From NCBI GenBank assembly GCA_040285825.1, contig JAUPSS010000003.1, forward strand, positions 992,001-1,056,000: a stretch of DNA of 64,000 nt. Direction: 5' to 3'. Below, in pieces: positions 4,109 to 47,819 of the stretch. The DNA comes from Eukaryota sp. TZLM1-RC. Taxonomy: Eukaryota; Protista; Metamonada: BaSk clade. The notes under the pieces were generated by a model. It worked only from the letters and a program-made list of their open reading frames with translations. It made no database searches and was not told where the DNA came from. The position numbers were made by a program, and so were the translations under genes. Each line of letters starts with the position of its first letter. The stretch's first letter is position 1.

Positions 4109-4163
4109 CCGTGATTGGAAAGATGTTACTGCTAACATCATGGTCGTTTAAGCCATTAATTAA

Positions 4164-4359
4164 TGTGGCCTGTGACATAATGGTAACAGCAAAAAGGTAA
4201 GATAACTTTACTAAAATTCACTGGCCCTTATAAAGGCCATCACTAGTGAAGTCTATACTAGATTAATTGTCCACAGTACAACAGGTGATATTTACTGCTA
4301 TTAGATTGTATAATTCCGAGTTGTTGTTGATTCTGTCTCCTCTAATATTGCAAATGACA
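4164..4359 (-). repeat. Putative 5' LTR of element 1 (~196 bp)
   Basis: Starts TGTCATTTGCAATATTAGAG (compare TGTTAGTCTTTACAATATTAGAG of element 3) and ends ...GGCCACA before the palindrome. The partner LTR is not in the window, so boundaries are inferred by analogy. Confidence 0.65.
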
Positions 4360-4726
4360 TTTTGGCTCAAAAAAGAAAACTTAATCCTGTAAATGGTCTT
4401 GAGTACAAAGCGAAATAAAAAAATAGAAAATATGGCAACATTTTATGACACTCACGAATTCTGTTCGCCATAATTAATAGATCTATTCGGTTCTGTCATC
4501 TAAAGAGAGAACCAGTGGTTTGAAAACAAGCTAATCGGGAGTTTCTAGAGGAACTCTTGGTTTAATGAATTTCTTTACCATATCTTTATTGATTTAAAAT
4601 TCTATCTAGTTTTCAAGATCCTCCAAACAAGCGTCACAATTACTAAACCTACTCACAGCATTTTGTTTATATTCTACAACAATAGCTAAAAGAGTTTTAG
4701 AAATCTTTGTTTGAATAGACTTAAAA

Positions 4727-7354
4727 ATGCAAAAAACAATTGTATTTAACCAGAAAGTTGGTTCTTTTTGTCCTCTTTTTGAACAAAATTTCGTAAATAA
4801 TTCCGAAGATTTAACTAATATAGCACCGAGAAATCAGTCATCCGAGAAATTAAGTAAAATTTTTGAAGACAAATGCTTTGACAACAAATGGTCCAAGGCT
4901 TTGTCAGCTTTAAGTCCCGGAGTTAAAGCATCCAACAATGAAAATACATCAGATAAACTAAAAATACTTCATCCTTATGAAGGCCCTATAATGGATCAAA
5001 ATTTTTACGGCACTTACTGGGAAAATTATCCATTGATGCCATCAGAAGTATTTTCGGTGATCAAAAAGAGACCACGCGGTAAGTCTGCCGGACTTTCTGG
5101 TATTACTATTGATCATGTACAAGCCGCCATTATTTCGTCAGAGGATTGTCTTGGTTTATTAACCAAATTTTTCAATAAAATATTGAATGGACAACTCAGA
5201 TATCCAGATGAATTAAGAAGTTCTCGTTTGACTGCACTTGTCAAAAATTCAAAAATGGATGTTCGTCCTATTGCAGTCTCTGAGAGCTTACAGAATATTT
5301 TTTCTGCGTGTTGCTTAAGCAGGTTCAATGAGAAAGCAAAAAAGATTTTATTACCCTTCCAATATGGAATTAATACCACGGATGGAGTCTCTTCAGCGAT
5401 ATTTGCTACTGATGTATTATTTCGCCAAAATGAATCCAATAATTGTATGTCATTGGATTTCAGTAATGCTTTCAATTCACTCAGTCGTCGCAGTATCCAT
5501 GGTGCTCTATTGCAATATATGCCGGAATTAATGCCGTATTTTCAATCAACATATTGCACATATTCTAATTTACATTTTGGTGATAGCATTTTGAGTTCAT
5601 CAAGTGGTGTAAAGCAAGGAGATCCGTTAGGACCTCTTTTGTTTTGTTTGGCCATTCATCCTATTTTACTGCAAATTCAAGAGATGTTTCCTTCGCTAAA
5701 GATGATTGCATATATGGATGATGTTGTGCTAATTGGTGATTTAAATATTGTGAAACAAGCAACTGTATGTTTTAAAGAATTATTTACCAAAATTGGTCTC
5801 CGACTCAATTTACTTAAATGTGTTTTGTTATCGAATTCTCCAGTTTCCACAATAGTTGTTGGTATTGAAATTCAAGCCAAATTATATTCAATTGAAGCTA
5901 TTCGTCATTTGGGTTCGTTTTTAGGAAATAATGATGAAATTACCAAAAAATTGTTTGAAAAGTTGAACTCATTTTCTGACAAAATTGACCGAATGATGAA
6001 TTTAGATATACAAAAACACATCAAATTTACCATTATAAGACTGTGTTTTAGTTCTAAATTTAATCATATATTTCGATCTACAAATCCTCTCGTCACTAGA
6101 CATTTGGCTCAGAAGTTTAATGAGTTACGTGCAAAAGTTCTGTCTCAATTACTGGGATGTAAAATGTTCCAAATTCCAGATCATGCTTACCTTAGTCCAC
6201 ATTATGGCGGTTTAGGGTGGACGAAGGCTTCTATTCTTACCTCGTGTGCTTTTGTTGGAGGATGCAGAAATGCAATCTTTGAGTTTTCCGAAAGATTTGC
6301 AGATTGGGAAGATTTATTGATGACAACGCAAAGTTACACTGTTTTTGCATTAAATGACGAAATTTCAAAAATTGATGTAGAAAAATGGGGTCGATGTTTT
6401 CCCCAATCATTCAATGGCAATATTCCAGAAAAAAATGTTTTAAATTTGAAGTACACTCTTCGAACATTACAGAAACGATTGACTGGAATGTATGAAAAAG
6501 ATCTTTATAATAATATATGCAGCTCGGCTGTTTTAAATCAAGATCTTCACTCATTGTTATTGGAAAAGGGTGTTTGTGAAAACAAGTCGTCAGATTCTTC
6601 ACTTTTTGTAACCATGGTACCACGAAGATTTGGATTGTGTGCCACTAATGAAGCATTTGTAACAAAAATGAGATTATATTTGAATATTCCCATTAATCAA
6701 TTATTATCAAAAGACAAATGTATTTGTTCGAATTCACCTCAACTCACTTTGCGCCATGCTCTGAATTGCTCTAAATTGATAACTTATCGTTCTTCATTAC
6801 ATGATGCTGTTAGAGACACTGTTTTCAATATGGCACAAACTGCAAGAATATCGTGTATCAAAGAGCCCCTGCTGAAGGAAACACTTTTTCTGAATAATTT
6901 TGGTTCTGATGATAGAGGTGATGTATACTGTGATTGGATTGATAATTCTGAAGCTATTGTTGACTTTGTCTCATGTAATGTTGCAAATGATACTTTGCTT
7001 CACAGAAGAAAACTTAATCCTGTGGCTGCTCTGGATTTTAAAGCAAAAGAGAAACATAGAAAATATGAAAAAGATATTGAAGAGGCTAATGCTGATAGAA
7101 ATACACAGCTGGTTTTTATTGCTTTCCCATTTTTGCTAAACGGAAGACTATCAGTAGAAGCAGAAATTTTTTTGAATGACTTCCAAAAAATGGTTCAAGA
7201 AAAAACAATGGAAAGATTCGATATATTTTTATGGCACTCTCGGATTCAATTTGCCATTATCAATAGATTACCTCGGTTTTTCAATCGAATTACAGAAGGT
7301 TTAGCTAGACAGCAAGCACATAAAGATTTTGTAGAGGAAATCTTGGTTCAATGA
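4727..7354 (+). CDS. Reverse transcriptase + restriction-like endonuclease polyprotein of a CRE-like non-LTR retrotransposon (family A)
   Basis: 875-aa ORF with VRPIAV, LDFSNAFN, GVKQGDPLGPLLF, AYMDD, CIC...H...C zinc motif, HDAVRD, EP...RGD...D...KHRKY RLE motifs. Confidence 0.92.
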   Translation: MQKTIVFNQKVGSFCPLFEQNFVNNSEDLTNIAPRNQSSEKLSKIFEDKCFDNKWSKALSALSPGVKASNNENTSDKLKILHPYEGPIMDQNFYGTYWENYPLMPSEVFSVIKKRPRGKSAGLSGITIDHVQAAIISSEDCLGLLTKFFNKILNGQLRYPDELRSSRLTALVKNSKMDVRPIAVSESLQNIFSACCLSRFNEKAKKILLPFQYGINTTDGVSSAIFATDVLFRQNESNNCMSLDFSNAFNSLSRRSIHGALLQYMPELMPYFQSTYCTYSNLHFGDSILSSSSGVKQGDPLGPLLFCLAIHPILLQIQEMFPSLKMIAYMDDVVLIGDLNIVKQATVCFKELFTKIGLRLNLLKCVLLSNSPVSTIVVGIEIQAKLYSIEAIRHLGSFLGNNDEITKKLFEKLNSFSDKIDRMMNLDIQKHIKFTIIRLCFSSKFNHIFRSTNPLVTRHLAQKFNELRAKVLSQLLGCKMFQIPDHAYLSPHYGGLGWTKASILTSCAFVGGCRNAIFEFSERFADWEDLLMTTQSYTVFALNDEISKIDVEKWGRCFPQSFNGNIPEKNVLNLKYTLRTLQKRLTGMYEKDLYNNICSSAVLNQDLHSLLLEKGVCENKSSDSSLFVTMVPRRFGLCATNEAFVTKMRLYLNIPINQLLSKDKCICSNSPQLTLRHALNCSKLITYRSSLHDAVRDTVFNMAQTARISCIKEPLLKETLFLNNFGSDDRGDVYCDWIDNSEAIVDFVSCNVANDTLLHRRKLNPVAALDFKAKEKHRKYEKDIEEANADRNTQLVFIAFPFLLNGRLSVEAEIFLNDFQKMVQEKTMERFDIFLWHSRIQFAIINRLPRFFNRITEGLARQQAHKDFVEEILVQ

Positions 7355-8501: not shown

Positions 8502-8950
8502 TAGATTTTTTAGTATTTGTATTAACCTTTTTTGTTTTGTATATGTGTTGAAATTAAGTTTTTGATAAATTTTGATGGTTTTGTGAACTGGAATTTTTAT
8601 TCAATTTGGATCGACACAGAAATCAGTACATTCAATCTTATAGTTAGAAAACAGTAGGTAATCCCACATTACTTGATAATTGTATTTGGAATAACTGCTG
8701 TGGCAAAATAAAATTCAAATAAATTTAATACCCAAGTTCGATTTCGTTTTTTGGTGTTTTTCAATGCAATTCACGAATGAACCAATTATTCTCACATTCA
8801 AGCTATAACAAGGAAGTAAGCAGAGCAAGCTTTAGTAGACAGGGGCATGTACAAGCATCGAGTCCAACTTTTTGGTATTTGGAGCATTTTTGAAACAATT
8901 TGGAGTTTGAAGAAAAATTTGGTTGGGAAATTTTTGATGCAAAAATGAAG

Positions 8951-9104
8951 TGTTAGTCTTGAATAGTATTTATAGTTAATAGTTTAGTTATTAGTATTCC
9001 GCCTGTTAGCTTAAGAAGAGAGAATACAATTCCTCTTCGTAATAAATTACACTTCTGTTACTCTACATTGTATGTCAAACAATAACCAACAGCCAAGACC
9101 ATCA
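8951..9104 (+). repeat. 5' LTR of element 2
   Basis: Direct repeat of 16193-16346. Confidence 0.97.
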
Positions 9105-10916
9105 ATACGTATTGGGTCGTCCCCGGCTCAGCGTAGGATCCTTGAGGAAGAGACTGGTCCCTCTTCCTCACCACTAACCACAGACCCTGCTTCCGTGCCT
9201 CCTTCTTCGGTTGAAGCTTCTGCGCTTCCTGAAGCAACTCTTCCCGAGAGTTCCACCCCAAAGGAAAATAGTTCCCTTCCTGAGGATTCCGTTCCAATGG
9301 AAGGAAGTTCCCCTCCTCTGGATTCCGTTCCTGTGGAAGGAGACAGCCCTCCTAAGGATTCTATTCCTTCGGAAGGAAGAAGCCCTTCATTAGTCTCCTA
9401 CGACGATGAAGATGCTGAGGACTCCGTTGCTCCTCTTCCTCCTTCACGTTTAAGGGCGTCTGAAGTCCCACCTTGTCCCCTCCCAGAAAGAAGTTCTGAA
9501 GTACCAACTTCACCTTCTATTCAGAACAGAGAGACTGTTCAACCTTCTCTCACGTCAAAGGAAGGATTGGAAGATCAACCCTCTTCCTCCTCTACTAAGG
9601 CCATTGAAGTACCATCTTCATCCCTTTCATCTAGTTCTGAGGTTCCACCCTCTCACTCTCAACAGCTTCTCCCTCCAGTTCCAACTGTTAGGAGAACTAT
9701 CCAAAATCCTGCTGTTCCAACTTCAGGATCTCCTCTAACTTCAACAGTTAGTGGAGTTAATAATCTGTCTGTTTCCCCTCACCCGGCTAGTGATTCCATT
9801 CCTAGCCTTTCGAACCTTCCTTCGTTTCTTTCCGAAGAGCAAAGGAAAAGGTACGAACAAATCTTTTCAGATTTGGTTGAGTACGAGGAACCTCCCAAGG
9901 AATTCTCCCCTCTACATCAACATCAGGTCCCTCCCACGGCACCTTCTTCTGAAATTGACAAAATTCCTGGTGAGGTCTCTAAAGAGTATATAGAGCGTTT
10001 TCTCCAAGAAGAACGAAACTGGGAACACAGAAAAAGATTGGACAAAGAGATTGAAGCTAGAAGAGGAACATCCTCTACACCTGCTCAACTTACCCCTTCT
10101 CAAACTAGCTCCCACGCTAGCTCAAGTGTTCATCATGGTGCTTCCCGTCAGCACAACCCTTACGCTAGATATAGGGACACACGAGTCATTCCAGAGGATC
10201 CAGAAGCCATCCCTCCCACGGAGATGAGCAACAAACGTCCTCCTTTCTACGGTCCCAAAGTCGAGAACGACTTAGGAATATGGATCTCTCCCAGAATTGG
10301 TCCATTTCTTTCCGATGAAAGGATCACCCCAGAAACCTCCAGGAATGACCCTGAACCAACTTATGAACCAAGACCCGGAGTTAGGTTCATGAGAACTACT
10401 CGAGAAGGAGTATTCAGACGCTTCGCTGGAGATGAAGATAACCTCTTCTTAAATGTTTACAACCCTTGCCCATACCCTAGGTTCAGCCCTGGGTACAACG
10501 CATCTCTCGATATCCTTATCGACAGAGATTATAGAACAGGGTGGTGGTTTACCGAAACCACATATGGTGAAAGACTCTTTCTATACGACAGACGTCCTGA
10601 CCATATAGCTTCATATTGTGATCCTGACCACAGAAGATCTGGCAATCTTCAAAGAGCCCTCCAGCTTGTCACCGTTTTCCCTGGATGCATAGAATCCAGG
10701 ATGTTGAAGTGGGTAATGGTAGAAGGTCGTATAGAGAAAACACGCTTGGTTCAACCAGCGATCTCTTCTTACCAAGTTCCAGCCCAGATTGAAGAGATAG
10801 AACCTTCTCCTGAACCTCACCAACGCGAAGTTCCACCTTCCACAGATCAACCTATGGAAACTTCTACAGAACCCTCGCATAATCCTCCATGGAACAAACT
10901 GAGGAGGATGTTGTAG
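9072..10916 (+). CDS. Element 2 gag N-terminal part (Ser/Pro-rich repeats + unknown domain)
   Basis: 614-aa ORF starting inside the 5' LTR; shares PME(T/Q) repeats with the next ORF in the -1 frame. Confidence 0.75.
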   Translation: MSNNNQQPRPSIRIGSSPAQRRILEEETGPSSSPLTTDPASVPPSSVEASALPEATLPESSTPKENSSLPEDSVPMEGSSPPLDSVPVEGDSPPKDSIPSEGRSPSLVSYDDEDAEDSVAPLPPSRLRASEVPPCPLPERSSEVPTSPSIQNRETVQPSLTSKEGLEDQPSSSSTKAIEVPSSSLSSSSEVPPSHSQQLLPPVPTVRRTIQNPAVPTSGSPLTSTVSGVNNLSVSPHPASDSIPSLSNLPSFLSEEQRKRYEQIFSDLVEYEEPPKEFSPLHQHQVPPTAPSSEIDKIPGEVSKEYIERFLQEERNWEHRKRLDKEIEARRGTSSTPAQLTPSQTSSHASSSVHHGASRQHNPYARYRDTRVIPEDPEAIPPTEMSNKRPPFYGPKVENDLGIWISPRIGPFLSDERITPETSRNDPEPTYEPRPGVRFMRTTREGVFRRFAGDEDNLFLNVYNPCPYPRFSPGYNASLDILIDRDYRTGWWFTETTYGERLFLYDRRPDHIASYCDPDHRRSGNLQRALQLVTVFPGCIESRMLKWVMVEGRIEKTRLVQPAISSYQVPAQIEEIEPSPEPHQREVPPSTDQPMETSTEPSHNPPWNKLRRML

Positions 10917-12187
10917 TAGAAGTCAGTGATGAGTCCCCAACTCCAGACTCAATTCCAACTGTGCTAGCACCAATGGAACAAACTCCAGCACCTGTACAGC
11001 CTATGGAACAATCAGTGGTTCCACCCACACCTCCTTCCACTGGTTCAACAAGTTCACAACACACGGCTCAACCAACACCTTCTACGGTTAGTTCTTCACG
11101 TTCTACTTTCTCAGGTACTTATGATAGTAACCTTCTCCGATCTTCCATGGTGGGATCAAGAGATAGAGACAACAGACGCAGAGACCGCCCCAAACGTCCA
11201 ACTCTCGACGCGACTGATTTAAGAGATGTTGATAAACTCCTCAAGTTTGTTAACAAGTTTATCCTCTGGAGTCGTACAGACAGAATTGTAGACGAGGCTC
11301 GAGGCAACATCGAGGATCCTGCCCAAGTTGCTTTAGCCAGCGAAGTTGCTAGACTTCGTGAAGAACTTGAACGAGCTAGATCAGCAGAACTGGCATCTGA
11401 CCAACGGTTCGACAGTGAACCAATTCATGAATGGGATCTTTTCAGATCTGCCATGCGCATTAGTCCTAGAGGCTTAGCTGAATGCGTTACACCTGAAGCT
11501 CTCAACGCTTTAAGGTATCAAGGCACTGGCCTTTCAATTTCCTCCGCCATGGTCCCAACCAGCAGAGACGAACGCAACATTTGGGAACAGATCCTAAGGA
11601 GAACCCAATTCAGCAGACTGGATCAAGCCCTGGACGCACTTCATGCTGTACACATGGATTGGTCTGAGAGAGATTATGGTAACAGATGGATAGACTTCAT
11701 GCTTAATACAGGCAGAGTCTTAACGCGTTCCACCGCTATCCAAGACGTTCGTGGTCTGACTCATCAAATGAGAAACATCACCATCCACGGAAACCCCGTC
11801 GACCGACTCCCCGAATGGGAAATTGCTTCTCACGTCATTGAAAGCATCGGTATTACCATCATCAGGGACAGACTCCTCAGGATCTGGTCCAATCCCTCCC
11901 ATTACTACTCAGATGGCCACACCCTAGGAGAATTTTTCAGTGTCCTCCAAATAGAATACGAAAATTTCTGTAATGCTAGATCTTTTAAGGAGCAGATCAA
12001 TCACGTGGACTTCTTGTATCAAAATAGAATCTCGTTTCAGACTGAGAACCGTCGCAGACAAACGGTACCTTCTCCCCCTGCTATCCCCAAACCAAGAGGT
12101 TCCAGCTCTGGCAGGCGCCCAAAACAACAACGACGAGAAGGAAGCTCTACTCAACCGTCTTCCACTCAGTCTGATGCCAACGTCTAA
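10889..12187 (+). CDS. Element 2 gag C-terminal (capsid-like) part
   Basis: 432-aa ORF homologous to element 1 ORF 2028-2678 (KLLKFVNKFILW / KILEFIVNFANW; PIHEWDL / AIHEYDF; IWEQIL..TQF / IWEFLL..TQY). In frame with the zinc knuckle and pol across a TAA. Confidence 0.75.
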   Translation: MEQTEEDVVVEVSDESPTPDSIPTVLAPMEQTPAPVQPMEQSVVPPTPPSTGSTSSQHTAQPTPSTVSSSRSTFSGTYDSNLLRSSMVGSRDRDNRRRDRPKRPTLDATDLRDVDKLLKFVNKFILWSRTDRIVDEARGNIEDPAQVALASEVARLREELERARSAELASDQRFDSEPIHEWDLFRSAMRISPRGLAECVTPEALNALRYQGTGLSISSAMVPTSRDERNIWEQILRRTQFSRLDQALDALHAVHMDWSERDYGNRWIDFMLNTGRVLTRSTAIQDVRGLTHQMRNITIHGNPVDRLPEWEIASHVIESIGITIIRDRLLRIWSNPSHYYSDGHTLGEFFSVLQIEYENFCNARSFKEQINHVDFLYQNRISFQTENRRRQTVPSPPAIPKPRGSSSGRRPKQQRREGSSTQPSSTQSDANV

Positions 12188-15100
12188 TGCAATTTCTGTA
12201 AACAAATGGGTCATCCGACTGAAAGGTGCCCTAGTGAGGACTGCCAAAGAAGCAAAAAGTGGAGAGAGCAACAAGCTCAACACAAAGCTCGAGGCAGAAG
12301 TTCTAGAGGTTCTGGTTACCGTAGTCGAAGAGGCACTTGCGGCAGAGGCAGAGGCTCTTCATCATATAATAAACGTTCCCGTCACTATTTACACAGTTTT
12401 GAAACCATACCCCCTACAACTACAACACATTTCCACACAGAAAACACAACATGGAAAGATTCCCTAATCAATCCTTTGGCCAACTTGGAACATACCAAGA
12501 CGCATAACATTCAAGCTAATTTCTTCTCAGAACAAGCTCAATATGATTCTGATACATTATTTATGGTACGATCCATAAAGTCCACAACCAACTGCCTTCA
12601 ATTAAACTTCTCGATCAACAATGTCGAGGTTAAAGGCATAATCGACTCTGGCGCAACATGCTCAGTAGTCACGGAAGACGTCATCAGCAATTGTAACATG
12701 GCACGTTCCAACGAAACCATATCCTACAAGATTGCTGATGGATCCACCTCACAGTCCCTCGGTACTGCCTCTGGAACCCTTAGTATTAGACTAGGCTGTG
12801 TTACCCAGATTGTACATGTGAAACACAAGTTCAGCATCGTTCCTGGACACGAGACCATTCTCATTGGTGCCGACTTGCTGAGTCACCTTGGACTGATGAA
12901 CAACAAGGGCATTTATATTAGAATGGACGACGCCTGTCGCACATTACTATTACCTGAAGCTGAATTCGATCATCGAATATCACAAGCTTCGGAAGTCGTC
13001 AACGTTTCCACACGTTGGTTGGAACACATCAACTCATCTGGTTGTACCATCAACCTCGACAACGACCATTTCAAGAAGTCCCTACTTCAAACTTTGAAGG
13101 AGTTCGAAGACGTATTTACCCTCAAGCCTCATGCTGAAGGTATTGATTGCCCTCCCATGGAAATCAACTTCTACAACGAAGACGTCAGAGTTAGAAGACC
13201 CCCCAGGACCCTGAATCCAGCCAGGCTAGAGGTCGCTAACCAAATTTTCGACGAACTCGTAGACTCAGGGTTTGCTGTCCCATCGAACCATGAGTTCAGC
13301 TCCCCTGTCTGTCTAGTGGTCTACCCAGATCACCGTAAGCCCCGCCTTACTGGTGACTATAGTGGCAAGGACGGAGTCAACGCCAACACCATTCCTGTTG
13401 AGCCCAACCTTCCAAGGATCTCCGATGTGCTGGTATTTCTCTCCCAAGCGAACTACATAGGCACCCTTGACCTCCCCAAAGCCTTTTGGCAACTCAAGAT
13501 TGCCGAAAGGATTGGCAGAAAAACAGCCCTGAGCATTCCTGGCAAAAGCATCATGTTCAAACGTGCAGCTTTTGGCCTAAAGAATGTCCCAGCCGTTTTC
13601 CAAAACGTCATGGCTGACATCTTCTCGGGAGACGGTGTCTTCATTTACATAGATGACATCATAATCATAGGTTCAACCTTTGACGAATTCATTGAACGCC
13701 TCCGTCGCGTCCTTGATCAAGCCAGATGCAAAAGAGTTTCCTTGGGACTTCCAAAGTGCCATTTCGTGACTTCCAGACACCCAATCAAGATACTGGGCAG
13801 TGTTTTCCAAAACAAACAGCGGACTATCGATCCCACTCGCGGTGAATCTTTGCTGAATCTACCGAGACCAAAGACAATCAAAGACGTCCGCAGCCTCGTA
13901 GGATCAGTCAACTTCATTAGAGAATGGCCTCCTCAGGTATCTGAGCTCATCGCTCCTATCATCAGATTGACTAAGAAGGATGGAAATAACTCCAAAGTTA
14001 AACCCAAACCCCGCGCGCAACGCCTTCAATGGACCGACATGCACGACGGACTCCTTCAAAAGATCAAAGAACTGATAGCGAAGCACATGCCGCTCAGCTT
14101 ACCTCCGCTGGAAAACCAAATTTTAATTAGTTGCGACGCATCCGACATTGCTGTAGGCGGCGTCATATGGGAACAAATCGAACAAGTCGACGACCCCGGT
14201 ACCCCCCTGATCAACAGGAAATGTAGGCCTATCAGCTTCTTCAGCCGGTTGTTAACCAACTCGCAAAAGAACTGGCCGACAAACCAAAAGGAACTCTATG
14301 CTATCCTAATCATGTTAACTCAAAGTGGTTTTGAAAACTACTTGAAAGGAAGGAAACTGGTTATATTCACAGACCATCAAAACCTTACCTACATGTTCAC
14401 GGGTCCTGAGAAGAACAAAATTGTAACAAGATGGTTACCCATATTCTCTGAATTCTGCTTTGATTTGGTACATACCAAAGGGGAAGATAACTTCTGGGCT
14501 GATATGTTGTCTCGAATAGTTCCGCCTATAGACCATCAAGAGATCAATCATTTGTCCCATCAAATGCCTCCAAATTTTCATCCAATATTTTACATTGATA
14601 AAATTGATGGAACAGAAAATGAAAGATACTACATCGAAGACTTAAACAACTTCGAACGTATCATGGTCATCACAGAACGATGTTCCAACGACCTGCCTAT
14701 TTTCGAGCCATGGCTCTGTAGGATTAGGTCCGAACAGAAGCTTGCCATAGCTTCCAAAGACCCCTCTTTCAACAACTGTGTTCATAACAATCATCTTGAT
14801 TTATATATGACTCACGACAACAAGATAGTGATTCCCAAATCACTCATTAAGGACACCCTTAACTTGTTGCATGGACTTCTGCAAGGAGGTCATCCAAGCA
14901 AAGCTGAAAGCCTGAACAAGCTCAGGAACAGCGATTATTGGTGGCCAAACATGCTCACCGACATGAATAAGCACGTCCAAGAATGCCCCTCCTGTCAGAA
15001 AACAAAGCCAGTTCCCAAACTGCATGTTCCCCCAACCGGTTCATTGTGGGCTGACAGACCTTTTGCTCGCGTCAACGGCGACGTCATTGGTCCTCTTCCA

Positions 15101-16198
15101 GAAGATCAAGAAGGCTACAAATACATCCTCGTATTTATTGACAGCTTCTCTAGGTTCACGATCATCGTGCCTTTAAAAGAGATAAATGCCAATCTTACTG
15201 CAGATGCATTAATTTGGAAAGTCTGTGCCATCTTTGGTATTCCATTTCAAATCCACAGCGATAATGGACCCGAATTTTCCAAGGCTGTCTTTGACGAATT
15301 AAGCAAATTTTTGGGCATAGAGGTGTCAAAGTCAATACCTAGGTTTTCTCCGTCCAACGGCTTGGTAGAGCGCCGACACAGAGACATCCTGCAAAACCTA
15401 CGGAAATTGCTCGTAGACTTCAATGCCTACGATGTGTGGTCTGAATACTTGCCTTATGTGCAATTATTGATCAACTCTTCCAAGAGCTCAATAACCAACC
15501 ACACCCCATACCAAGTGATCTTTGGCTCAGATGTGTCCCCCAGATCAGACCCTGGCAAAATTCTTGAAATCATTGAAAGCTCGACGTCTGAGTCATCTTT
15601 TATTCAAGAAATTCAATCTAAATTTCGAAGATTGAAAGAGAAACAGGAAAAGGCAGCACACCATCAAGCTTCCAAAGCTTCCAAGCTAACTAGATCGTCA
15701 ACTCCAAACCCTTTTGAAGTTGGTCAATTGGTATTGAGAGCATATGGCTCTTCCGCTAAGCTTCATGGAGACTATTTAGGACCCTTCCTAATTACTGAAA
15801 TCGTATCCAATTCGTCTGTGAACATTAAGAATCTCTGCACAGGTACGATTGTCCAAGCTAGCGTCAAACACTTAGCTCCCTGGCACTCCAGCTTGCCCAC
15901 CAACGATGAGTTCCACTCCTGGGTCGCTGCAGGTGATGTCGAAGAACACATCATTGAAAAAGTGCTCAGTCAGGAAGGTGACTTTTGCCAAGTGCAATGG
16001 CCAGGAAAAGAGATCACCACTGAGCATGTGTCTACTGTCCAAAATACTGCCGCGTATAAAGACTTTATCAAGACTTCAAAAGCACGTCGCCGTACTAAAT
16101 CCGCTCCTCCCAAGAAGCGTCATATTTCCATTAGTTCACCTCCTGTGACTAGAGCTTCCAGGGCTCGTCGCTCGAAAGAGAGGAAAAGGCAGTGTTAG
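12188..16198 (+). CDS. Element 2 zinc knuckle + pol (protease, RT, RNase H, integrase, chromodomain-like C-terminus)
   Basis: CNFCKQMGHPTERC, IIDSGAT, FIYIDD, CDASD...KEL...TDH...ADMLSR, H...H...CPSC, D...SDNG...VER, and C-terminal IIEKVL...VQWPG...TTE. Confidence 0.95.
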   Translation, partial: CNFCKQMGHPTERCPSEDCQRSKKWREQQAQHKARGRSSRGSGYRSRRGTCGRGRGSSSYNKRSRHYLHSFETIPPTTTTHFHTENTTWKDSLINPLANLEHTKTHNIQANFFSEQAQYDSDTLFMVRSIKSTTNCLQLNFSINNVEVKGIIDSGATCSVVTEDVISNCNMARSNETISYKIADGSTSQSLGTASGTLSIRLGCVTQIVHVKHKFSIVPGHETILIGADLLSHLGLMNNKGIYIRMDDACRTLLLPEAEFDHRISQASEVVNVSTRWLEHINSSGCTINLDNDHFKKSLLQTLKEFEDVFTLKPHAEGIDCPPMEINFYNEDVRVRRPPRTLNPARLEVANQIFDELVDSGFAVPSNHEFSSPVCLVVYPDHRKPRLTGDYSGKDGVNANTIPVEPNLPRISDVLVFLSQANYIGTLDLPKAFWQLKIAERIGRKTALSIPGKSIMFKRAAFGLKNVPAVFQNVMADIFSGDGVFIYIDDIIIIGSTFDEFIERLRRVLDQARCKRVSLGLPKCHFVTSRHPIKILGSVFQNKQRTIDPTRGESLLNLPRPKTIKDVRSLVGSVNFIREWPPQVSELIAPIIRLTKKDGNNSKVKPKPRAQRLQWTDMHDGLLQKIKELIAKHMPLSLPPLENQILISCDASDIAVGGVIWEQIEQVDDPGTPLINRKCRPISFFSRLLTNSQKNWPTNQKELYAILIMLTQSGFENYLKGRKLVIFTDHQNLTYMFTGPEKNKIVTRWLPIFSEFCFDLVHTKGEDNFWADMLSRIVPPIDHQEINHLSHQMPPNFHPIFYIDKIDGTENERYYIEDLNNFERIMVITERCSNDLPIFEPWLCRIRSEQKLAIASKDPSFNNCVHNNHLDLYMTHDNKIVIPKSLIKDTLNLLHGLLQGGHPSKAESLNKLRNSDYWWPNMLTDMNKHVQECPSCQKTKPVPKLHVPPTGSLWADRPFARVNGDVIGPLPEDQEGYKYILVFIDSFSRFTIIVPLKEINANLTADALIWKVCAIFGIPFQIHSDNGPEFSKAVFDELSKFLGIEVSKSIPRFSPSNGLVERRHRDILQNLRKLLVDFNAYDVWSEYLPYVQLLINSSKSSITNHTPYQVIFGSDVSPRSDPGKILEIIESSTSESSFIQEIQSKFRRLKEKQEKAAHHQASKASKLTRSSTPNPFEVGQLVLRAYGSSAKLHGDYLGPFLITEIVSNSSVNIKNLCTGTIVQASVKHLAPWHSSLPTNDEFHSWVAAGDVEEHIIEKVLSQEGDFCQVQWPGKEITTEHVSTVQNTAAYKDFIKTSKARRRTKSAPPKKRHISISSPPVTRASRARRSKERKRQC

Positions 16199-16346
16199 TC
16201 TTGAATAGTATTTATAGTTAATAGTTTAGTTATTAGTATTCCGCCTGTTAGCTTAAGAAGAGAGAACACAATTCCTCTTCGTAATAAATTACACTTCTGT
16301 TACTCTACATTGTATGTCAAACAATAACCAACAGCCAAGACCATCA
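16193..16346 (+). repeat. 3' LTR of element 2
   Basis: Direct repeat of 8951-9104, preceded by a PPT. Confidence 0.97.
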
Positions 16347-16439
16347 GAAGAAGGAATAGGGTGGCAAAAAGCAGTGGAAAGAGTACTAAAAACAGATAAC
16401 AACACTTGCTCCTTTCTTTGAATTCCTTTGGAATCAGAA

Positions 16440-27225: not shown

Positions 27226-28057
27226 CATAAAATAATAACAATAATTTAAAGAAGTAAAATAATATTAATTCAAATATAAAACAAAATAATATTAATTCAA
27301 ATGGAAATTCAACTTTCAAAACAATTAATTGTTGGAAGTAATTGGGAAAAGCATCAACAATTCAAAGGGCACTGGAGCACGCTATTTTCAACAGATCAAA
27401 AGAAATTCCAGATGGGCTTGCAGCTTTTCGTTTTGGTAGTTTTTGAGATAGTTTTGGAAACTTCAAATGCAGAAACCGTACTTTCAATCCAAACAAGATA
27501 AACAACAGGCTTGCGTCACTTCAAATTTTCTTGAGGATGCAATGTTGAAGTTCGTATTAAATATCACATTACATACAATTCTTTACTTTTCGAGTTCCCA
27601 CTTAAATTTATCATTATTTATTTCAGAATGTTATCTTTTTTTGTTCTAGCATTTGCAGCTTAACTATAACAGATGTTAGTCTTAAACAATCGTACTTCTA
27701 GATGTTTGATGGTACTTTGGTGGTTGTTTATCATTGAGGAAAAACAGAAACAGTCTTGTTTGATAAACAAATAGTATAAACAACTAATTCCAAACAAATA
27801 ATAAACGGAAAAATAGATCTTCAACATTGTAATATAATATTCTTCTTATATTTTGACTCCATTATTTTTGTTGATATAGACCAATACAAAGATATTTTAA
27901 CCCATAAAGATTTGCCCATAGTATCTGCATTAACTTGGAAAAGTTATAATGCTGTGTTTATAAGTTTAAGTTTTCAACTTTTGCAGCCTTTGAATAATAA
28001 TGATGGTCTAGGCTGTTCCTTAGGGATTGAAATATCCTGAAATGTAATGAGATATTT

Positions 28058-28098
28058 TACTTATTTTACTTATTTTATTTATTTTATTTATTTTATTT
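28058..28098. repeat. AT-rich simple repeat (ttatttta)n
   Basis: Visible tandem units. Confidence 0.8.
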
Positions 28099-28204
28099 CA
28101 CGAGAAGAAATAGAATTCCCTAAACCTGACAGAATTAAGTATCTTTGAATTTTTAATTCAAAGCTATCAACACTATTCAAGACTAACAATCAAAAAAAGT
28201 ATTT

Positions 28205-35935: not shown

Positions 35936-36039
35936 ATACATCCGTCAAAATTCAGTGAATTTGCCTTCGTTTTCGAAATTTTTGAATCAATTATGTAAGG
36001 GAAAATATGCTATCAATATCTCTGGGAATGTTTTGGTTC

Positions 36040-37262
36040 TTTTTGTGCTCCTTTTGAACACATTTTCGTTGGAAATTCTGTAGATTTAACTAATAATGCA
36101 CCAAGAAAAAAGCCATCTGAGAAATTGAGCAAAATTTTTGAAGATAAGTGCTTTGATAACAAGTGGTCTAGTGCTTTGTCTACTTTAAATCCAGGAGTCA
36201 AAGCTCAAATAATCAACAAACTGTAGATAAACTTCAGATCCTACCCCTTTTGAAAATTGAATAATGGATCAAAATTATTATGGAGATTATTGGGAAAGTC
36301 ATCCATTAATGACAACAGAGGTATTTACAGTAATCAAAAAGTGACCACACGGAAAGTCTGCAGGACTTTCTGGCCATTTTATTGATCATATCAAAGCTGC
36401 GATTATTCTTTAGAAGATTGTCTAATTTTATTAACAAAAATTATTTAATAGAATTTTATCTGGTCAACTCAAATATCCTGAAGAATTACAATGTTCACGT
36501 TTGACTGCACTTGTAAAGAACTCAAAAATGGATGTTCGTCCAATTGCAGTCTCTGAAACTTTACACAAAATTATTTCTGCTTGCTGTTTAAATAGATTCA
36601 ATGAAAAAGCAAAAAAATTGTTACCATTCCAATATGGAATCAATACCACTGAAGAAGTTGCTTCAGCAGTATTTGCTACAGATGTTCTATTTCATCAAAA
36701 TGAATCCAATGTTTGTATGTTGTTGGATTTTAGCAATTCAATCAGTCGTTGCAGTATTCATGGAGTCTTGTTACAATATTTGCCAGAATCAATGCCTTAT
36801 TTTCAAACAACTTATTTCACTAATTCTGATTGCATTTTGGTGATTCTATTTTGAAATCATCAAGTGGTGTTAAGCAAGGAGATCCCTTAAAACCTCTTTT
36901 GTTTTGCTTGGTCATTCATCCTATTCTATTTCTAATTCAAGAGAGGTTTCCTTCGCTAAAAATGATTGCATATATGGATGATGTTGTTCTTATAGGTGGA
37001 TGCAGAAATGCAATATTTGAGTTTTCTGAAAAATTTGCCGATTGGGAAGATTCATTAATTACAACGCAAAGTTCCACTGTTTTTGCATTAAATGACGAAA
37101 TTTTAAAAAATGATGTAGAAAAATGGAGTCCATGCTTTCCCCAATCATTTAATGGCAATATTCCTGAAAAGAATTTTTTAAATTTGAAATTCTCCCTTCG
37201 AACATTACAGAAACGATTGACTGGAATGTATGAAAATGATCTTTACCATAATATATGCAGCA
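36040..37262 (+). mobile_element. Degenerate non-LTR family A copy with an internal deletion
   Basis: Colinear with 4758-6520, but YMDDVVLIG is fused directly to GGCRNAIFEF. Confidence 0.9.
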
Positions 37263-37370
37263 CGACCTCACCTAAAATATGTGCTTGAAGTGCACAATCA
37301 ATTAATTTGTTAATTTACCTTTCATTCACCTTTCCAGCTATATCATAACCTTCTTGAATGGCCCATTCCT

Positions 37371-42321: not shown

Positions 42322-42777
42322 GGCAGATGCCATGAATTCATCTCCAATTTTCACATTGGAACAGTGTCTCTTTATTTAGAAACCTCGTAGTTGGGATGTT
42401 GACGGATTGTCGAGAAGGTCCATTAACACCATTACCAAACCAAATAATAGTTTTCCTGTAATTGGCTAGTGTTTTGATTTTGTTAATAAATTAATCTCTA
42501 TTGTCTTAAAATATAATCATATTTATTTCGTTGCCAATTGCTCTCTGTACTATTGGTCAATGTTCGCAAAACCAAAGAAACTGTTCCCTGCTTGTCATTC
42601 TTACTCTTGAAGCTATTTCCATGAGATACCTGTTAAAGCTCTCAACGAAATAGATGTTGACAGAGGATCGAGTGAGCGGTTTTGGAAAATCAATTACTTT
42701 TACTTTCGGGCTCAGAAGAATTCAAGATTGTTCAACCATTACCCCATTATCTTGTGAAAAATGCCCAGTTGTCCAAC
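42322..42777 (-). pseudogene. Fanzor copy 3, 3' part
   Basis: FINKIKTLANYRKTIIWFGNG..GPSRQSV...VKIGDEFMASA with stops and frameshifts. Confidence 0.8.
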
Positions 42778-42970
42778 TGATGCCTGTGGGCTAGGGTTAG
42801 ACATATGTATAGAGAGAGAGAGTAATAGATTACGACGGGAAATGAGCTATAGTGAATTTCAATACCATCATTAGTGAAGTCTCCATGAACGAACAACAAA
42901 TAAACATTAAGCTAATATCTAAGAATAAATAGATGAGTCTATCTACACTCTAATATTGTAAAGACTAACA
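42778..42970 (-). repeat. 3' LTR of element 3 (193 bp)
   Basis: Direct repeat of 47629-47819. Confidence 0.93.
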
Positions 42971-45900
42971 CTACTTCTTCCCCTCCTTTCGACTGTCTCT
43001 TTTAGCTCTTCTACGAGGTTGCTTGCGAGTAGGTTGGCCAGCAGGGGGTCGCGACTTATTAGTCTGGAGGAAAGCTTGATAGGCCTTAGTGCTCTTAATG
43101 CGGTCGACAGGCTCAGTGCCTCGTACATCTCCAGCATATACAACTTGACACTCGTTACCATCTTGGCTCAGAACTTTTAATAAAAGATGTTCCTCAGTAT
43201 CACCTGAGGCCACGATACGATGAAACTCATCATCAGTGGGTTTATCAGAATGGTACAATTTGCATTGAGAAATGCTAGCCTTAGTTTCGACACCTGTGAT
43301 CAAGTTCTTTATTAATAAAGTTGATTTGCTAGGTTTGTCGATGACCAGATATGGGCCCAGATAATTCCCATGTAATTTGGAGTTACTAAATGATTTGAGG
43401 ATTAAGCATCCAACTTTTTATAGCAGGTTACTCGTGCTTGGCTTCTCCTGCAGCGATTTCGATGTTTGGGTGATTTATGCTTTTTTTCGTTCTTCTTTCA
43501 ATCGATTGAATTTAGATTGGATATCCAGAATGAAAGGAACCTCAGTGGTAGCCTTTTCGATGGTGGAGAAAATTGATAAAGGATCAGCTCTGGGACTGAC
43601 GTCTGACCCAAACATAAGCTCGAATGGACTGAAACCTGTGACAGAGCTGTTCGAAGAATTCGTTAAGAGTTGTACGTAAGGAATGTATTTTGACCAGTTG
43701 TCATAGGCGTTAAAATCGATTAGGAGATTCCTAAGATCTTGTAAGATGACTCTACGACGTCGTTCAACTAGGCCATTTGATTGACCGAAATTTGGAATAC
43801 TGTTCGTCACGTCGATAGGCAAGAATTCGCAGAGTGATTTAAACACGTTGTTGGCGAATTCTGGGCCGTTGTCACTGTGAATGCTGTATGGTATAGCGAA
43901 GATTGCACACACACTCCAAATCAAAGCGTCGTCTGTCAGCCTTGCGTTTAATTCTTTTAGGTGTACGAGGATTGTATACCGAGTAAACTGTCCACAAAAA
44001 CTAAGATGTACTTATTGGTCTCTTGATCTGGAGGGTGAGGGCCAATGGTAATCCACGTTCAACCTCGCGAAGGATTTGTCAGCCCAGAGAGATCCGGTGG
44101 ATGGAGTGATAGATTTGGGGACAGGTGCCGTTTTCTGACATGATGGACAAGAACGCACGTGGTTCTTCATATCATCAGTCATACTGGGCCGGTAGTAGTC
44201 GGTAGAGGATAGCCTGCGTAAACACTCAGACATACACCGCCTGATACATAACCGTGAATGATCAAGAGCGTGTCGTTGATGAGTAATGACGGGATGATTA
44301 TCTTGCCTGATTTGTTAAGGTAGAGGTCAAGATGATTGACGGAACAGTTATTAAATGAACGTTCGTGAGCTGCAACAGCTTGTCTTTGTTCTGAACGGAT
44401 TCTACTCAACCATGGATCGATCATGGGGATTGCAGATGCACATTTCTCTTTTAAAATGAGGATTTGGTGAGTATCCCGAAGGTTGTTTGAATCTGGAAGA
44501 GCAGAGTCGTCTGATGGATTATAGTTTCTGATATAATAAATTGGGTGAAACCGTTCATATGTGATCTCGCTCGCTAAAAAATGAGCGTTGCTTGTGTTTA
44601 TGCGTACAGGATCGGTCGTTGGGACCTGTCTGGATAGTATGTCTGCCCAGTAGTTGTTCTCCCCCGAGGTGTGTACCAACTCGAAGTCGAACTCACTGAG
44701 TATTGGTAACCAACGTGTGACAATTCGATTCTTATCAGGAACTGTTACCAGATATGAGAGGTTCCTGTGATCTGTGAATATCGTTAGCTTCCTACTTTTG
44801 AAATAGCTCTCGATGCATAATTCTGTTAGGATAAGAAGTATAGCGTAAAGCTCTTCTGCATCGTTGACCAATTCTTTTGGGAATCGGAGAGAATCCTGCT
44901 GAAGAAACTGATAGGTCTGATAGGTTGAGAGGAGTGCCATTGTGTTCACAAAGATCATATTCTTCCCAGATCACGCCGCCAATAGCAAAGTCTGATGCGT
45001 CACAACTAATAAGGACACCGTTATCTGCGGGGGGTAAACTCAATGGCATATTCTCTTTTATGAGTTGTTTGATCTTGTTGAAACGGAGTTTATGATCTGA
45101 GGTCCACTCGATACGGTGGGGGTTTCCTCTAGTAAGCTCGATGATAGGAGATATGATTTCGGATATGTATCCGAATTCAGCGAGTCTCTAATGTAGTTGA
45201 TGGATCCTACAAAACTTCTGACGTCTTTCACTGTCTTAAGAGCTGGAAGCTCGACCAATCCAGTTAGTCGTGAGGGATCGATTTGGCGTGTACCATTGAC
45301 GAAGATACTACCGATAATCTTGATTTCATGATCTTTAGACTTGAAATGGAATTTAGGTAGGCCAAGGCTGACCCGTTTTTCTTTAGCGCGGAAGAGGACG
45401 GCTTTGCGCCTGTCGATGAATTCAGGAAGGGTATTAACTATGATAATGACATCGTTTATGTAGATAAAAACGCCTCCGATGCTAAACATGTTGGACATTA
45501 CGTTTTGAAACACTCCGGGGACGTTCTTGAGAAGGAAACATGCCCTGTTGAAGTAGCTAATACTGCCACCTGGAATGCTGAATGTGGTTTTCTCGATGAC
45601 TCTTTCGTTGATCTTGAGTTGCCAAGATGCTTTTGGGAGATCAAGTGTTCAAATGTAATTAGCTTGAGATAAGAACTCTAATACATCAGAGATCTTTGGA
45701 AGGTTTGGAGCGATGGAAATAGTGTTCGCATTGACTCCATTCGGACCATTGAAATCGCCTGTAAGGCGTGGTTTCCGATGATCAGGATAAACTACAAAAA
45801 CAACTGGGGAGCTGAATCTGCCATTGGATTCTGTGGCGAAACCAGATTCGATTAACTCACCAAAGATTTGGTTGGCGATATTTAGTCGTTCAGGGTTTAA

Positions 45901-47628
45901 CCTGCAAGGTGGACGATAAACAACAGTGTCTTCATTGTAGAAATCGATGTCCATGGAGTTGCAGTCGATGCCGTCTTCATGAGGTTTCAACGTGAAAACA
46001 TCTTTGAACTTTTCGAGAGTTGCGAGGAGCTGTTGATTTTCTGATTGTTTGTTGAGCTTTGTTTGACAACCTGACGAGTTGATGTGATCTTCGAATGTTT
46101 TTGACAATTTAAAATCAGATATCTGTAAAATTCTGTGATCAAACTCGGATTCAGGTAACATTAGTGTTCTGTGAAGCTCATCGAGGTGATTGTATACCCT
46201 GTCGTTGTTCATGAGGCGGAGTTCATATAGAATGTCTATTCCTATAATTAAGATGTTGTTGCCTGGAACGATTGGTAACGATTTGGTAAGATGCACAACT
46301 TTGGCAATGCTGCCGACATTGAAGGATAGGACACCTTTGGCATTGCCGTCAGAGTTTGATGGTTCTCCGTTAACACCAATAAATTTGACAGATTTAGAGC
46401 TGTTTTCCATCTTGCATTTTGTGGATAGGTCTCTTGAGATGACAGATATGGATGCTCCACTATCAATGAGACCAGATACCTCTATGTTATTAGTCTGTAA
46501 TTAGAGTTCTATAAACTTGGGACAATTAATTGATTTATTGGCACAAACAGAAGACAAACTAAAAATTCTATTGATATTTGAAAATTCAGTGTGGGGAAAA
46601 GATGTGCTCAATGGATTTATGAGGCGTTTGGAGGGAATTCGTGTGATTGTAGGGAAACAGCGAGAGGGGCTGTCCCTGATGTTGGTGGTGACTCGGATGT
46701 TTTATGCAAGCCAAGAGAGTCGAAATCCACCGCGTTAGATGGAAGAAGGATGGGAGGAGAAGTGTCGAGATCCGAAACGGACATATTTCCAGAGAGGGGT
46801 TTGGGGATGGAGGGATCAGGAGAGAGAACTTGACCCCTGGGTACCCAGAAGACGCATGGGTTACCGTCTTCATCCTCACCATGAACAGCTATCTTTCTTT
46901 TGGCGAGAAGGTATGGGAGTGGTTTCGGGATTAGCTGAAAGGCCTGAAAATAGGAGAGTTTTCCAACGAGTTCCATACTGTCGACAGCTCCTGACCGTAA
47001 GCACTACGAGCGGCGAAAACGTGGCCTGGATTGAATTCGACTGCTGTCTCTATCCAAACGGAATGGATAGAAATCCATGAGGCAATCCGAATCTGGATGA
47101 GTCAAAGGATCATAGGGTTAGGGCATCAGCAAGAACTTAAAGTTGTGTCCATCTTCTTCAACCGAAGGAATCCGAGGAGGAGACTCGTTTAAAAACATTT
47201 GAATCATGAACTGCTCGAAATAACTCCTTAGGAACACGAGTAGCAACCTCTGACTTCAAGGCGAGTAAATCCAGGAAATTTAATAGTGTTAAATCCCTAC
47301 GGAATTTCTCAATGGTATACTGCCACTTGGATGTAGTAGGAGTAGATACCTTGGGAGAAGTAGAGGAGGGACGAACCTGACCAGTAGAATCTGTTGACTC
47401 CTTGGAAGCCGTGGAGGTAGACTCCCCTTTCGAGGTGTCTGCGTTGGCTTCTTCAGGAGAAGAAAAATCCTTGGCAGGAGTGAAGGCGTCCCCCTCTGAG
47501 TCCTGAGGATTGTTGGCGTGATGGGAGGCGAAATCCCTACGGCCGAGATTGGGGTTGGTTTCACCCGAAACTGAGGCAGTATCCAGAGATGCATGTTGTT
47601 CGTTAGCCGATGAACGGCCAATAATTAT

Positions 47629-47819
47629 TGATGCCTGTGGGCTAGGGTTAGGCATATGTACAGAGAGAGAGTAATTTATTACGACAAGAAATGAGCTATA
47701 GTGTATTTCAATACCATCATTAGTGAAGTCTCCATGAATGAACAACAAATAAACATTAAGCTAATATACAAGAATAAATAGATAAGTCTATCTACATCCC
47801 AATAGTGTTAAGACTAACA
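47629..47819 (-). repeat. 5' LTR of element 3 (191 bp)
   Basis: TG...CA; roughly 16 substitutions and one 2-bp indel against the 3' LTR (manual count). Confidence 0.93.

Follow-up and report, generated by a model that had tools for sequence, protein, structure and literature searches.

The DNA considered here is a 64,000-nt stretch, hereafter the window, from Eukaryota sp. TZLM1-RC, a Skoliomonas protist (assembly GCA_040285825.1, contig JAUPSS010000003.1, positions 992,001 to 1,056,000 of the forward strand). It contains three LTR retrotransposons, called elements 1, 2 and 3, along with a solo LTR of the element-2 type, and their features are collected in the table below. Element 2 is the most complete: its pol ORF gives Pfam hits in the order protease, RT, RNase H and integrase, i.e., the Ty3/gypsy order. 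Element 3 has a degenerate internal region with broken ORFs, while element 1 runs off the window start, with its RT fragment at the first bases of the window. Since the 3' LTR of element 1 lies outside the window, its 5' LTR was placed by homology to a second copy at L011:15391-15526, which has the same palindrome (L numbers designate loci with related elements). RT identity between the three elements is 64-65%, so they are diverged families.

Features of the three retrotransposons and the solo LTR, with positions counted from the first base of the window
Feature	Position	Strand	Description
Element 2, left target-site duplication (TSD)	8947-8950	+	GAAG; same four bases at 16347-16350
Element 2, 5' LTR	8951-9104	+	154 nt, TGTTAG..CATCA; 98% identical to 16193-16346; AATAAA 64 nt and gag ATG 33 nt before its end
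Element 2, palindrome	9103-9114	+	CAATACGTATTG; last two LTR bases, 8-nt core and TG; candidate primer-binding site
Element 2, gag-like ORF	9072-10916	+	614 aa, no Pfam match; starts inside U5 and reads through the palindrome as S-I-R-I-G
Element 2, second ORF	10889-12187	+	432 aa, no Pfam match
Element 2, pol ORF	12206-16198	+	protease, RT, RNase H, integrase
Element 2, polypurine tract (PPT)	16174-16192	+	GAAAGAGAGGAAAAGGCAG
Element 2, 3' LTR	16193-16346	+	followed by TSD GAAG (16347-16350) and no palindrome
Element 3, 5' LTR	47629-47819	-	191 nt; TSD CAAC (+ strand) at 47820-47823
Element 3, palindrome	47619-47630	-	CAATAATTATTG; across the LTR end
Element 3, 3' LTR	42778-42970	-	90.7% identical to the 5' LTR; TSD CAAC at 42774-42777; PPT at 42971-42990
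Element 1, 5' LTR	4164-4283	-	120 nt, TGTTGTAC..GCCACA; placed by homology
Element 1, palindrome	4154-4165	-	CATTAATTAATG; across the inferred LTR end
Solo LTR, element-2 type	28002-28188	-	ends in AGACCATCA; followed by host DNA with no palindrome

The original prediction was that a self-complementary 12-bp palindrome lies at the 3' edge of each 5' LTR in place of the tRNA primer-binding site (PBS), and this observation holds: all three palindromes are present where they were placed. In elements 2 and 3, for which LTR pairs, 4-bp TSDs and PPTs fix the LTR ends, the LTR ends two bases inside the palindrome, and the solo LTR shows that the right-hand 10 bases of the palindrome are internal sequence and not LTR. 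Twelve-base palindromes overall are at chance level in the window (19 seen, 19.5 expected), whereas palindromes of the form CA-N8-TG number 5 against 1.4 expected, and three of them sit exactly on LTR ends. The other two, at 52552 and 55505, are not at recognisable LTR ends. The gag peptides read across the site differ, as predicted, being SIRIG, SIIIG and TLING.

To extend these data, relatives were fetched from three genomes (TZLM1-RC, TZLM3-RCL and GEM-RC1), and all 13 readable 5' junctions have the palindrome starting at the last two LTR bases, i.e., CA, an 8-nt palindromic core, and TG. Nine of the elements have LTR pairs, 4-bp TSDs and PPTs that fix the boundary. Among the loci left out for want of a usable junction, L004 is 5'-truncated, and L008 and L009 gave no LTR pair at the element. 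In one element, L010, the 100% identical LTRs end in TA instead of CA (TSD AATG), and the last two bases of the palindrome become TA. Where the base before CA is A, the base after TG is T, giving 14-nt palindromes in L005, L005b, L007 and L011. Thus, in Skoliomonas and its relatives, a whole clade of gypsy-type elements carries a perfectly self-complementary sequence of 12-14 nt where a tRNA primer should bind.

There are seven different palindromes among the 13 junctions, and every difference between them is compensatory. In an alignment of 10 junctions, all 60 core pair cells are Watson-Crick, four of the six core pairs change on both sides, and none changes on one side only; sliding the partner by 1-3 columns drops pairing to 23-47%. 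The covariation score is 0.489 against 0.155 in shuffles, a value reached by 0 of 500 shuffles. On the RT tree, sister elements differ by double changes, for example L003 with ATACGTAT against L012 with GTACGTAC, and distant branches share cores, so that such changes happened more than once. However, the 13 junctions are related by descent and are not independent, and the count of independent double changes rests on a tree with several weak nodes. No G-U intermediates, which an RNA-RNA pairing might tolerate, were seen in this small sample.

The palindrome also changes slowly compared with its surroundings. Elements with only 51-67% Pol identity, in two species, keep the identical palindrome while the next 12 bases are unrelated. 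Among diverged genomic copies aligned to positions 8850-9450, none of the variant rows examined falls in 9095-9121, although variants are dense on both sides. Protein coding does not account for this, as the site lies before the ATG in L010 and in a different frame in L005. As for pairing, the 12-mers are predicted to form homodimers with energies of -7 to -18 kcal/mol, and in 110-nt contexts the lowest-energy predicted dimer pairs the palindrome between molecules in 11 of 13 cases, which is a consistency check only.

Three outcomes had been named beforehand as able to overturn the proposal, and two of them were examined and did not occur. No complement of the site, such as the 5' end of a Tf1-type transcript would provide, exists in the LTRs, nor does a second copy: the longest match is 4-6 nt in 8 of 8 elements, no more than shuffled controls give. 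In addition, no family with a readable junction lacks symmetry (13 of 13). Regarding the remaining one, a tRNA site at the TGG downstream of the LTR, a scan with ARAGORN found no tRNA gene in the window or in nine loci (239 kb in all), and the evidence against such a site comes only from comparing the junctions, discussed below. No RNA sequencing run was found to contain the element, while the four runs aligned to it are of DNA contigs (one, of unrecorded kind, gave no alignment) and show no joints or stacked ends at the site.

Relatives outside this clade were also sought. The sister protein in the tree, P0031 (35% identity overall, 41% over RT-RNase H), carries a chromodomain, whereas Pfam finds none in the Skoliomonas proteins. 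P0031 lies on one 6.1-kb Logan contig with no second LTR and has no close relatives in the protein search; its site, CA followed by GTGATCAC and T, is suggestive only. A metagenome scan with a Pol alignment returned only distant gypsy elements at 23-32% identity, with one short 96-residue match at 42%. Six repeat pairs found there were a poor control set: none has a palindrome at the end of its first repeat copy, and one has an ordinary TGG site.

The explanation we favor, with no more than moderate confidence, is that the palindrome is the minus-strand PBS of a clade of compact Ty3/gypsy retrotransposons that no longer uses a host tRNA. The 3' edge of an LTR is set by where the 3' end of the primer sits, and in this view the primer must pair with the 8-nt core that directly follows the terminal CA. 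Because this core differs between families but is always its own reverse complement, the primer would have to be element-encoded, and the only element sequence complementary to the site is the same site on another RNA copy. In the proposed mechanism, two element RNAs, most simply the two genomes packaged together, would pair antiparallel through the 12-14 nt palindrome, one strand would be cut after the 8-nt core, probably by the RT/RNase H of the element as happens in Tf1, and its 3' OH would be extended across CA into U5 and R of the partner. When plus-strand strong-stop DNA later copies the primer, including its CA, it would produce the core and TG, which would explain why positions 11-12 mirror the last two bases of the LTR. 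A difficulty is that a primer cut from the interior of a genome needs a defined 5' end as well, as otherwise plus-strand strong-stop DNA would run on into the U5 of the primer, and we have no evidence for such a second cut. The anatomy, the register and the covariation come directly from the analysis, as does the exclusion of the known alternatives, which for a tRNA site rests on comparison alone; the dimer, the cut site, the enzyme and the priming step itself are inferred from DNA sequence. The interpretation in the original prediction, that two element RNAs (or a short LTR-derived RNA plus the genome) pair through the palindrome and that a 3' end made within it primes synthesis into U5, is therefore supported in part: the palindrome sits where the PBS must be, and symmetry rather than protein sequence is what is kept. 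The accompanying suggestion that nothing of the kind had been described is not correct, as discussed below for fungal elements.

Other readings are less likely. The palindrome might be only an RNA dimerisation or packaging signal, with priming done by something else not yet recognised; self-complementary sequences near the 5' end drive genome dimerisation in retroviruses, Ty1 and Ty3 (PMC11381356), and those found here are predicted to pair between molecules. We consider this unlikely, because the palindrome occupies the only place a PBS can be, the LTR edge fixed by TSDs lies inside it so that any primer must pair with the variable core, nothing downstream is conserved, and the covariation of the last two LTR bases with positions 11-12 in L010 ties the site to LTR formation. 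Less likely still is Tf1-type self-priming, in which the 5' end of a transcript pairs with the site and is cut to give the primer, either by the genomic RNA folding back on itself or by a shorter RNA that begins at the palindrome pairing with the site on a genomic RNA. These are Ty3/gypsy elements without a TGG site, as are Tf1 and its relatives, the sister protein P0031 carries a chromodomain, and an RNA starting at the terminal CA would, because of the symmetry, be complementary to the site and need only one cut; however, the longest LTR complement is at or below the shuffled mean, there is no evidence for a transcription start at the LTR end, and Pfam finds no chromodomain in the Skoliomonas proteins.

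About equally improbable is that the symmetry serves at the DNA level, as a binding site for a dimeric protein (integrase, Gag or a host factor) or as a structure used during plus-strand transfer. Perfect Watson-Crick symmetry without any G-T pair is what such a site would show, and the cores resemble dimeric factor sites (ACGT, AATT), but seven different sequences with changes at four of six pair positions would need a different protein specificity in each family, and both the fixed register to an edge set by reverse transcription and the variant with TA at both ends fit base pairing better. Ordinary tRNA priming at the TGG that begins 8 nt after the CA of the LTR, with integrase trimming the extra bases, is very unlikely. 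This TGG follows the core in the three window elements and in 8 of 13 junctions overall, but the other five (L005, L005b, L007, L010 and L011) have TGT or TAT, and the bases after TGG differ even between elements that share the same palindrome (GGTCGTCC, GATCACCT and GCCTTCAT). Moreover, the G after TG pairs as a wobble, or covaries, with the base before CA, and removal of 8 bases would be unlike known integrase processing. As for a canonical PBS, TGG lies within 0-5 nt of the LTR end in 0 of 13 junctions, the bases after the LTR being ATA, ATT, TTA or GTA, and the variation of the site by compensatory changes is indirect evidence against complementarity to a host tRNA. Chance, or a by-product of a conserved gag N-terminal peptide, is refuted: although 12-base palindromes are at chance frequency in this AT-rich window and the site is translated in most elements, their per-position frequency is about 3 in 10,000, all 13 junctions carry one at a single exact register, and the coding frames and peptides differ as described above.

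A bolder possibility, which we regard as somewhat less likely than not, is a previously uncharacterised way of starting reverse transcription, where two co-packaged genomes pair through a palindromic PBS and a cut after the 8-nt core turns one genome, or both, into the primer for the other. The right half of the palindrome would be rewritten each cycle when the plus strand copies the primer, so that symmetry, including that of the TA variant, would be renewed by the mechanism as well as kept by selection. As the same layout of CA, 8-nt palindrome and T occurs in fungal GalEa copia elements, and may also occur in the sister lineage represented by L001, this would be a recurrent, convergent solution to doing without tRNA. 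Every LTR retroelement needs a primer for its first DNA strand, and only two solutions have been worked out experimentally, namely a host tRNA and the fold-back of its own 5' end in Tf1. A site that can pair only with a second copy of itself would tie priming to genome dimerisation and free the element from host tRNAs, and would be a third solution. This clade offers unusually clean comparative evidence, with short LTRs, many young copies and seven covarying variants, one of which changes the LTR terminus itself, and it turns the unexplained GalEa observation into a testable model. It also matters for annotation, since LTR finders that require a tRNA-complementary PBS will miss or down-rank these elements.

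Among known systems, Tf1 and the sushi group (Tf1, Tf2, Maggy, Skippy and others) are Ty3/gypsy elements that prime from their own RNA instead of a tRNA, through an RNA-RNA duplex of about 11 bp that forms at the PBS and is cut by the RNase H of the element (PMC5445492, PMC6934838). Tf1 pairs the first 11 nt of the transcript with a non-palindromic PBS on the same molecule, while here the site can pair only with a second copy of itself. The dimer initiation sites of retroviruses, Ty1 (PAL) and Ty3 (PAL6) are likewise short self-complementary sequences in the 5' region that pair two genomes, but they are about 6 nt, lie in hairpin loops away from the LTR edge, are separate from the PBS and coexist with tRNA priming (PMC11381356); the site described here is 12-14 nt, lies on the LTR edge, and no other candidate PBS lies next to the LTR. 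Skipper elements of dictyostelids are a chromovirus-type gypsy lineage of protists that lost the TGG site and has no Tf1-type complement, for which a novel form of self-priming was suspected, and their substitute is a polypyrimidine run and not a palindrome (PMC5006619).

The closest parallel is the Conserved Hairpin Site of fungal GalEa (Ty1/copia) retrotransposons (Donnart et al. 2017, PMC5445492). These lack a TGG PBS, and their LTR ends in CA and is followed directly by an 8-nt palindrome (CTGATCAG or CTAATTAG) and then T, so that the symmetry overlaps the LTR end; on comparison with supplementary files 4 and 5 of that work, this layout is found in 13 of 13 junctions here. GalEa variants differ at paired positions (3rd and 6th), no complement is found in U5, and the mechanism was left open. 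On the other hand, GalEa elements have the copia domain order and 5-bp TSDs and occur in Pezizomycotina, whereas those described here have the gypsy order and 4-bp TSDs and occur in metamonads. Most GalEa families have a second, nearly complementary 9-mer (CHSeq2) 6-41 nt downstream that forms a hairpin, although some lack it; here, the best downstream match has 4-6 mismatches in 10, no better than shuffles. Finally, GalEa symmetry reaches one LTR base (10 nt) and there are two main cores, while in the present elements it reaches two or three LTR bases (12-14 nt) and there are seven palindromes in 13 junctions.

Element 2, one of three LTR retrotransposons present in the window of this Skoliomonas-group metamonad, Eukaryota sp. 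TZLM1-RC, is intact, has a length of 7.4 kb, and contains three ORFs, the last of which carries protease, RT, RNase H, and integrase in gypsy order. Element 3 is older, as judged from its more diverged LTRs and its broken ORFs, while element 1 runs off the window start, and its 5' LTR was placed by alignment to a second copy found in L011, one of the loci fetched around Pol relatives. RT identity between the three elements is 64-65%, so they are distinct families. The coordinates of these elements, and of the other features found in the window and in the related loci (all labeled with L and a number), are collected in the following table.

Location and main properties of the features found in the window and in the related loci
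Feature	Location	Strand	Properties
Element 2, LTRs	8951-9104 and 16193-16346	+	98% identical, TGTTAG..CATCA; 4-bp target duplication (TSD) GAAG
Element 2, polypurine tract	16174-16192	+	
Element 2, gag ATG	9072	+	inside U5
Element 3, LTRs	47629-47819 and 42778-42970	-	90.7% identical; TSD CAAC
Element 1, 5' LTR	4164-4283	-	120 nt
Solo LTR of the element-2 type	28002-28188		followed by unrelated DNA
LTR-like start, TGTTAGTCTT	27674-27830	+	converges on the solo LTR at 28002-28188; probably another solo LTR, end not defined
ORF with only an RT domain	4727-7354	+	875 aa; next to the LTR of element 1
Direct repeats flanking this ORF	4283-4434 and 6916-7067		152 nt, 78% identical
Diverged second copy of the RT-only element	36033-37264		31 kb away
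L010, LTRs	6895-6985 and 12286-12376		100% identical, TG..TA termini; TSD AATG
Contig L001, carrying P0031	1-210 and 6100-6119		starts with TGT; CA at 199-200, then GTGATCAC and T; ends in a purine run
Arrays of AACACGTGTT / CAACACGTGTTG palindromic units	L010:14066-14311; L012:20880-21262		near RT genes
Duplicated segment of L004	L004:1-6404 and L004:11123-17525		6.4 kb, 99.6% identical
302-nt repeat of L011	L011:613-913 and four further copies; L011:15089-15390		five times in an upstream tandem gene array; also inserted into the 3' LTR of the element, cutting it at 15083

The observation made in the original prediction holds: the three palindromes are exactly where it placed them, and each of them begins at the last two LTR bases. 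Moreover, the solo LTR of the element-2 type lacks the remainder of the palindrome and every 3' LTR is followed by its TSD, and for this reason the right-hand ten bases of each palindrome are internal sequence. The element with only an RT domain belongs to another retroelement family.

Palindromes of twelve bases, taken as a class, occur in the window at chance frequency, with 19 observed against 19.5 expected, and what is not due to chance is their register. To examine this point, loci around Pol relatives were fetched from three assemblies, namely TZLM1-RC, TZLM3-RCL, and GEM-RC1, and LTR pairs were located in each of them by self-comparison. Together with the elements of the window, this gave 13 readable 5' junctions, nine of which have both LTRs and a 4-bp TSD. 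All 13 read (C/T)A, followed by an 8-nt palindrome and then by T(G/A), and there are seven different palindromes, six of them with distinct 8-nt cores. The palindrome, in the position of the primer-binding site, is thereby confirmed in a related metamonad as well.

Palindrome cores at the 13 readable 5' junctions
Core	Found in
ATACGTAT	element 2, L002, L003
ATAATTAT	element 3, L005b
TTAATTAA	element 1, L011b
ATTATAAT	L005
GTAATTAC	L006, L011
GTACGTAC	L007, L012
ATAATTAT, flanked TA..TA	L010

On an alignment of ten sequences, all 60 core pair cells are Watson-Crick, and four of the six core pairs show changes on both sides, while none shows a one-sided change. Sliding the partner by 1-3 columns leaves 23-47% pairing, and no shuffle out of 500 reaches the observed covariation. 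Two details are especially telling. The young element of L010 has identical LTRs that end in TA rather than CA, so that its integrase apparently tolerates TA at the U5 end, and its palindrome ends in TA rather than TG. In addition, where the base before CA is A, the base after TG is T, which gives palindromes of 14 nt. On an RT tree the elements form one clade (support 90/90), although several inner nodes of the tree are weak; sister elements differ by double changes and distant branches share cores, so compensatory change happened repeatedly. The DNA contigs show only that diverged copies vary densely on both sides of 9095-9121, with no variant inside this interval in the subset of rows inspected.

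Regarding other explanations of the site, a protein constraint is ruled out. In most related loci the gag ATG lies inside U5, 15-46 nt before the LTR end (69 nt in L005b, a 5'-only fragment), and the site is translated; however, in L010 the ATG follows the site, in L005 the frame differs, and the peptides vary. A poly(A) signal lies 43-65 nt before the LTR end, and the LTRs are only 91-191 nt long, so R and U5 must be very short. Nor is the site explained, on comparative grounds, by a tRNA pairing at the downstream TGG, because five of the 13 junctions have TGT or TAT there, and the bases after the palindrome are unrelated even among elements that share the same palindrome and have 51-67% Pol identity; no tRNA gene to compare with the site directly was found in the 239 kb scanned. 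Self-priming of the Tf1 type is likewise excluded, since the longest complement of the site anywhere in the LTR is 4-6 nt, no more than shuffled LTRs give, and so is a hairpin of the GalEa type, since there is no second, nearly complementary copy within 60 nt downstream.

In reverse transcription, the 3' edge of U5, and hence of both LTRs, is set by the position of the primer's 3' end. Here this edge, fixed independently by the TSDs, lies two bases inside the palindrome, and in this view the primer must pair with the 8-nt core. As the core differs between families and is always self-complementary, the primer must be element-encoded and must carry the same sequence, and its simplest source is the second genome in the particle. 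A symmetric RNA duplex of 12-14 bp would form, with a predicted energy of -7 to -18 kcal/mol for the 12-mers alone, and in 110-nt contexts the lowest-energy homodimer pairs the palindrome between molecules in 11 of 13 cases, which is a consistency check and not evidence. For the LTR to end at CA, the primer strand would have to end after the core, at position 10, and the first bases polymerized would then be T and G, opposite A and C. If the primer retains its own CA, plus-strand strong-stop DNA that copies it would end in the core followed by TG, and this end could anneal for the second jump only if the genome also reads TG after the core. This gives a mechanical reason why positions 11-12 mirror the LTR terminus, including the TA..TA variant.

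The palindrome at this position is thus real and general for this clade, whereas the dimer, the position of the cut, the enzyme (by analogy with the RNase H of Tf1), the need for a defined 5' end of the primer, and the priming step itself are all inferred from sequence alone, as no RNA run was found to contain the element. The interpretation put forward in the original prediction is therefore supported only in part: the reading as a tRNA-independent, self-complementary primer site is well supported by comparative evidence, while priming between two genomes is the best available mechanism but remains a hypothesis.

Some further repeats were found in the related loci. The arrays of palindromic units in L010 and L012 may be the termini of another element type, and the duplicated segment of L004 flanks a 5'-truncated element whose 3' LTR ends exactly at the duplication boundary.

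The same layout may exist outside Skoliomonas. P0031, the protein sister of the clade, lies on a single Logan contig (L001) from an unknown organism, in which AATAAA sits 48 nt before the CA that precedes GTGATCAC and T; this looks like the CA, 8-nt palindrome, and T arrangement, but there is no second LTR to prove it. Within a limited literature search, no paper was found describing a palindromic primer site in gypsy elements or a dimer-priming mechanism, and the closest precedent is the Conserved Hairpin Site of fungal GalEa copia elements (PMC5445492). In these elements the LTR ends in CA and is followed by CTGATCAG or CTAATTAG and then by T, there is neither a TGG site nor a U5 complement, variants differ at paired positions, and the mechanism was left open. 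GalEa elements differ from those described here in superfamily, TSD length, and host kingdom, their symmetry reaches only one LTR base, and they usually have a downstream partner that forms a hairpin, which is absent here. Self-priming of the Tf1 type is the nearest characterized mechanism, even though its defining complementarity is lacking in these elements, while the dimer initiation sites of retroviruses, Ty1, and Ty3 are short loop palindromes that coexist with a tRNA site. Finally, the Skipper elements of dictyostelids are another protist gypsy lineage that lost the TGG site, but they replaced it with a polypyrimidine run.
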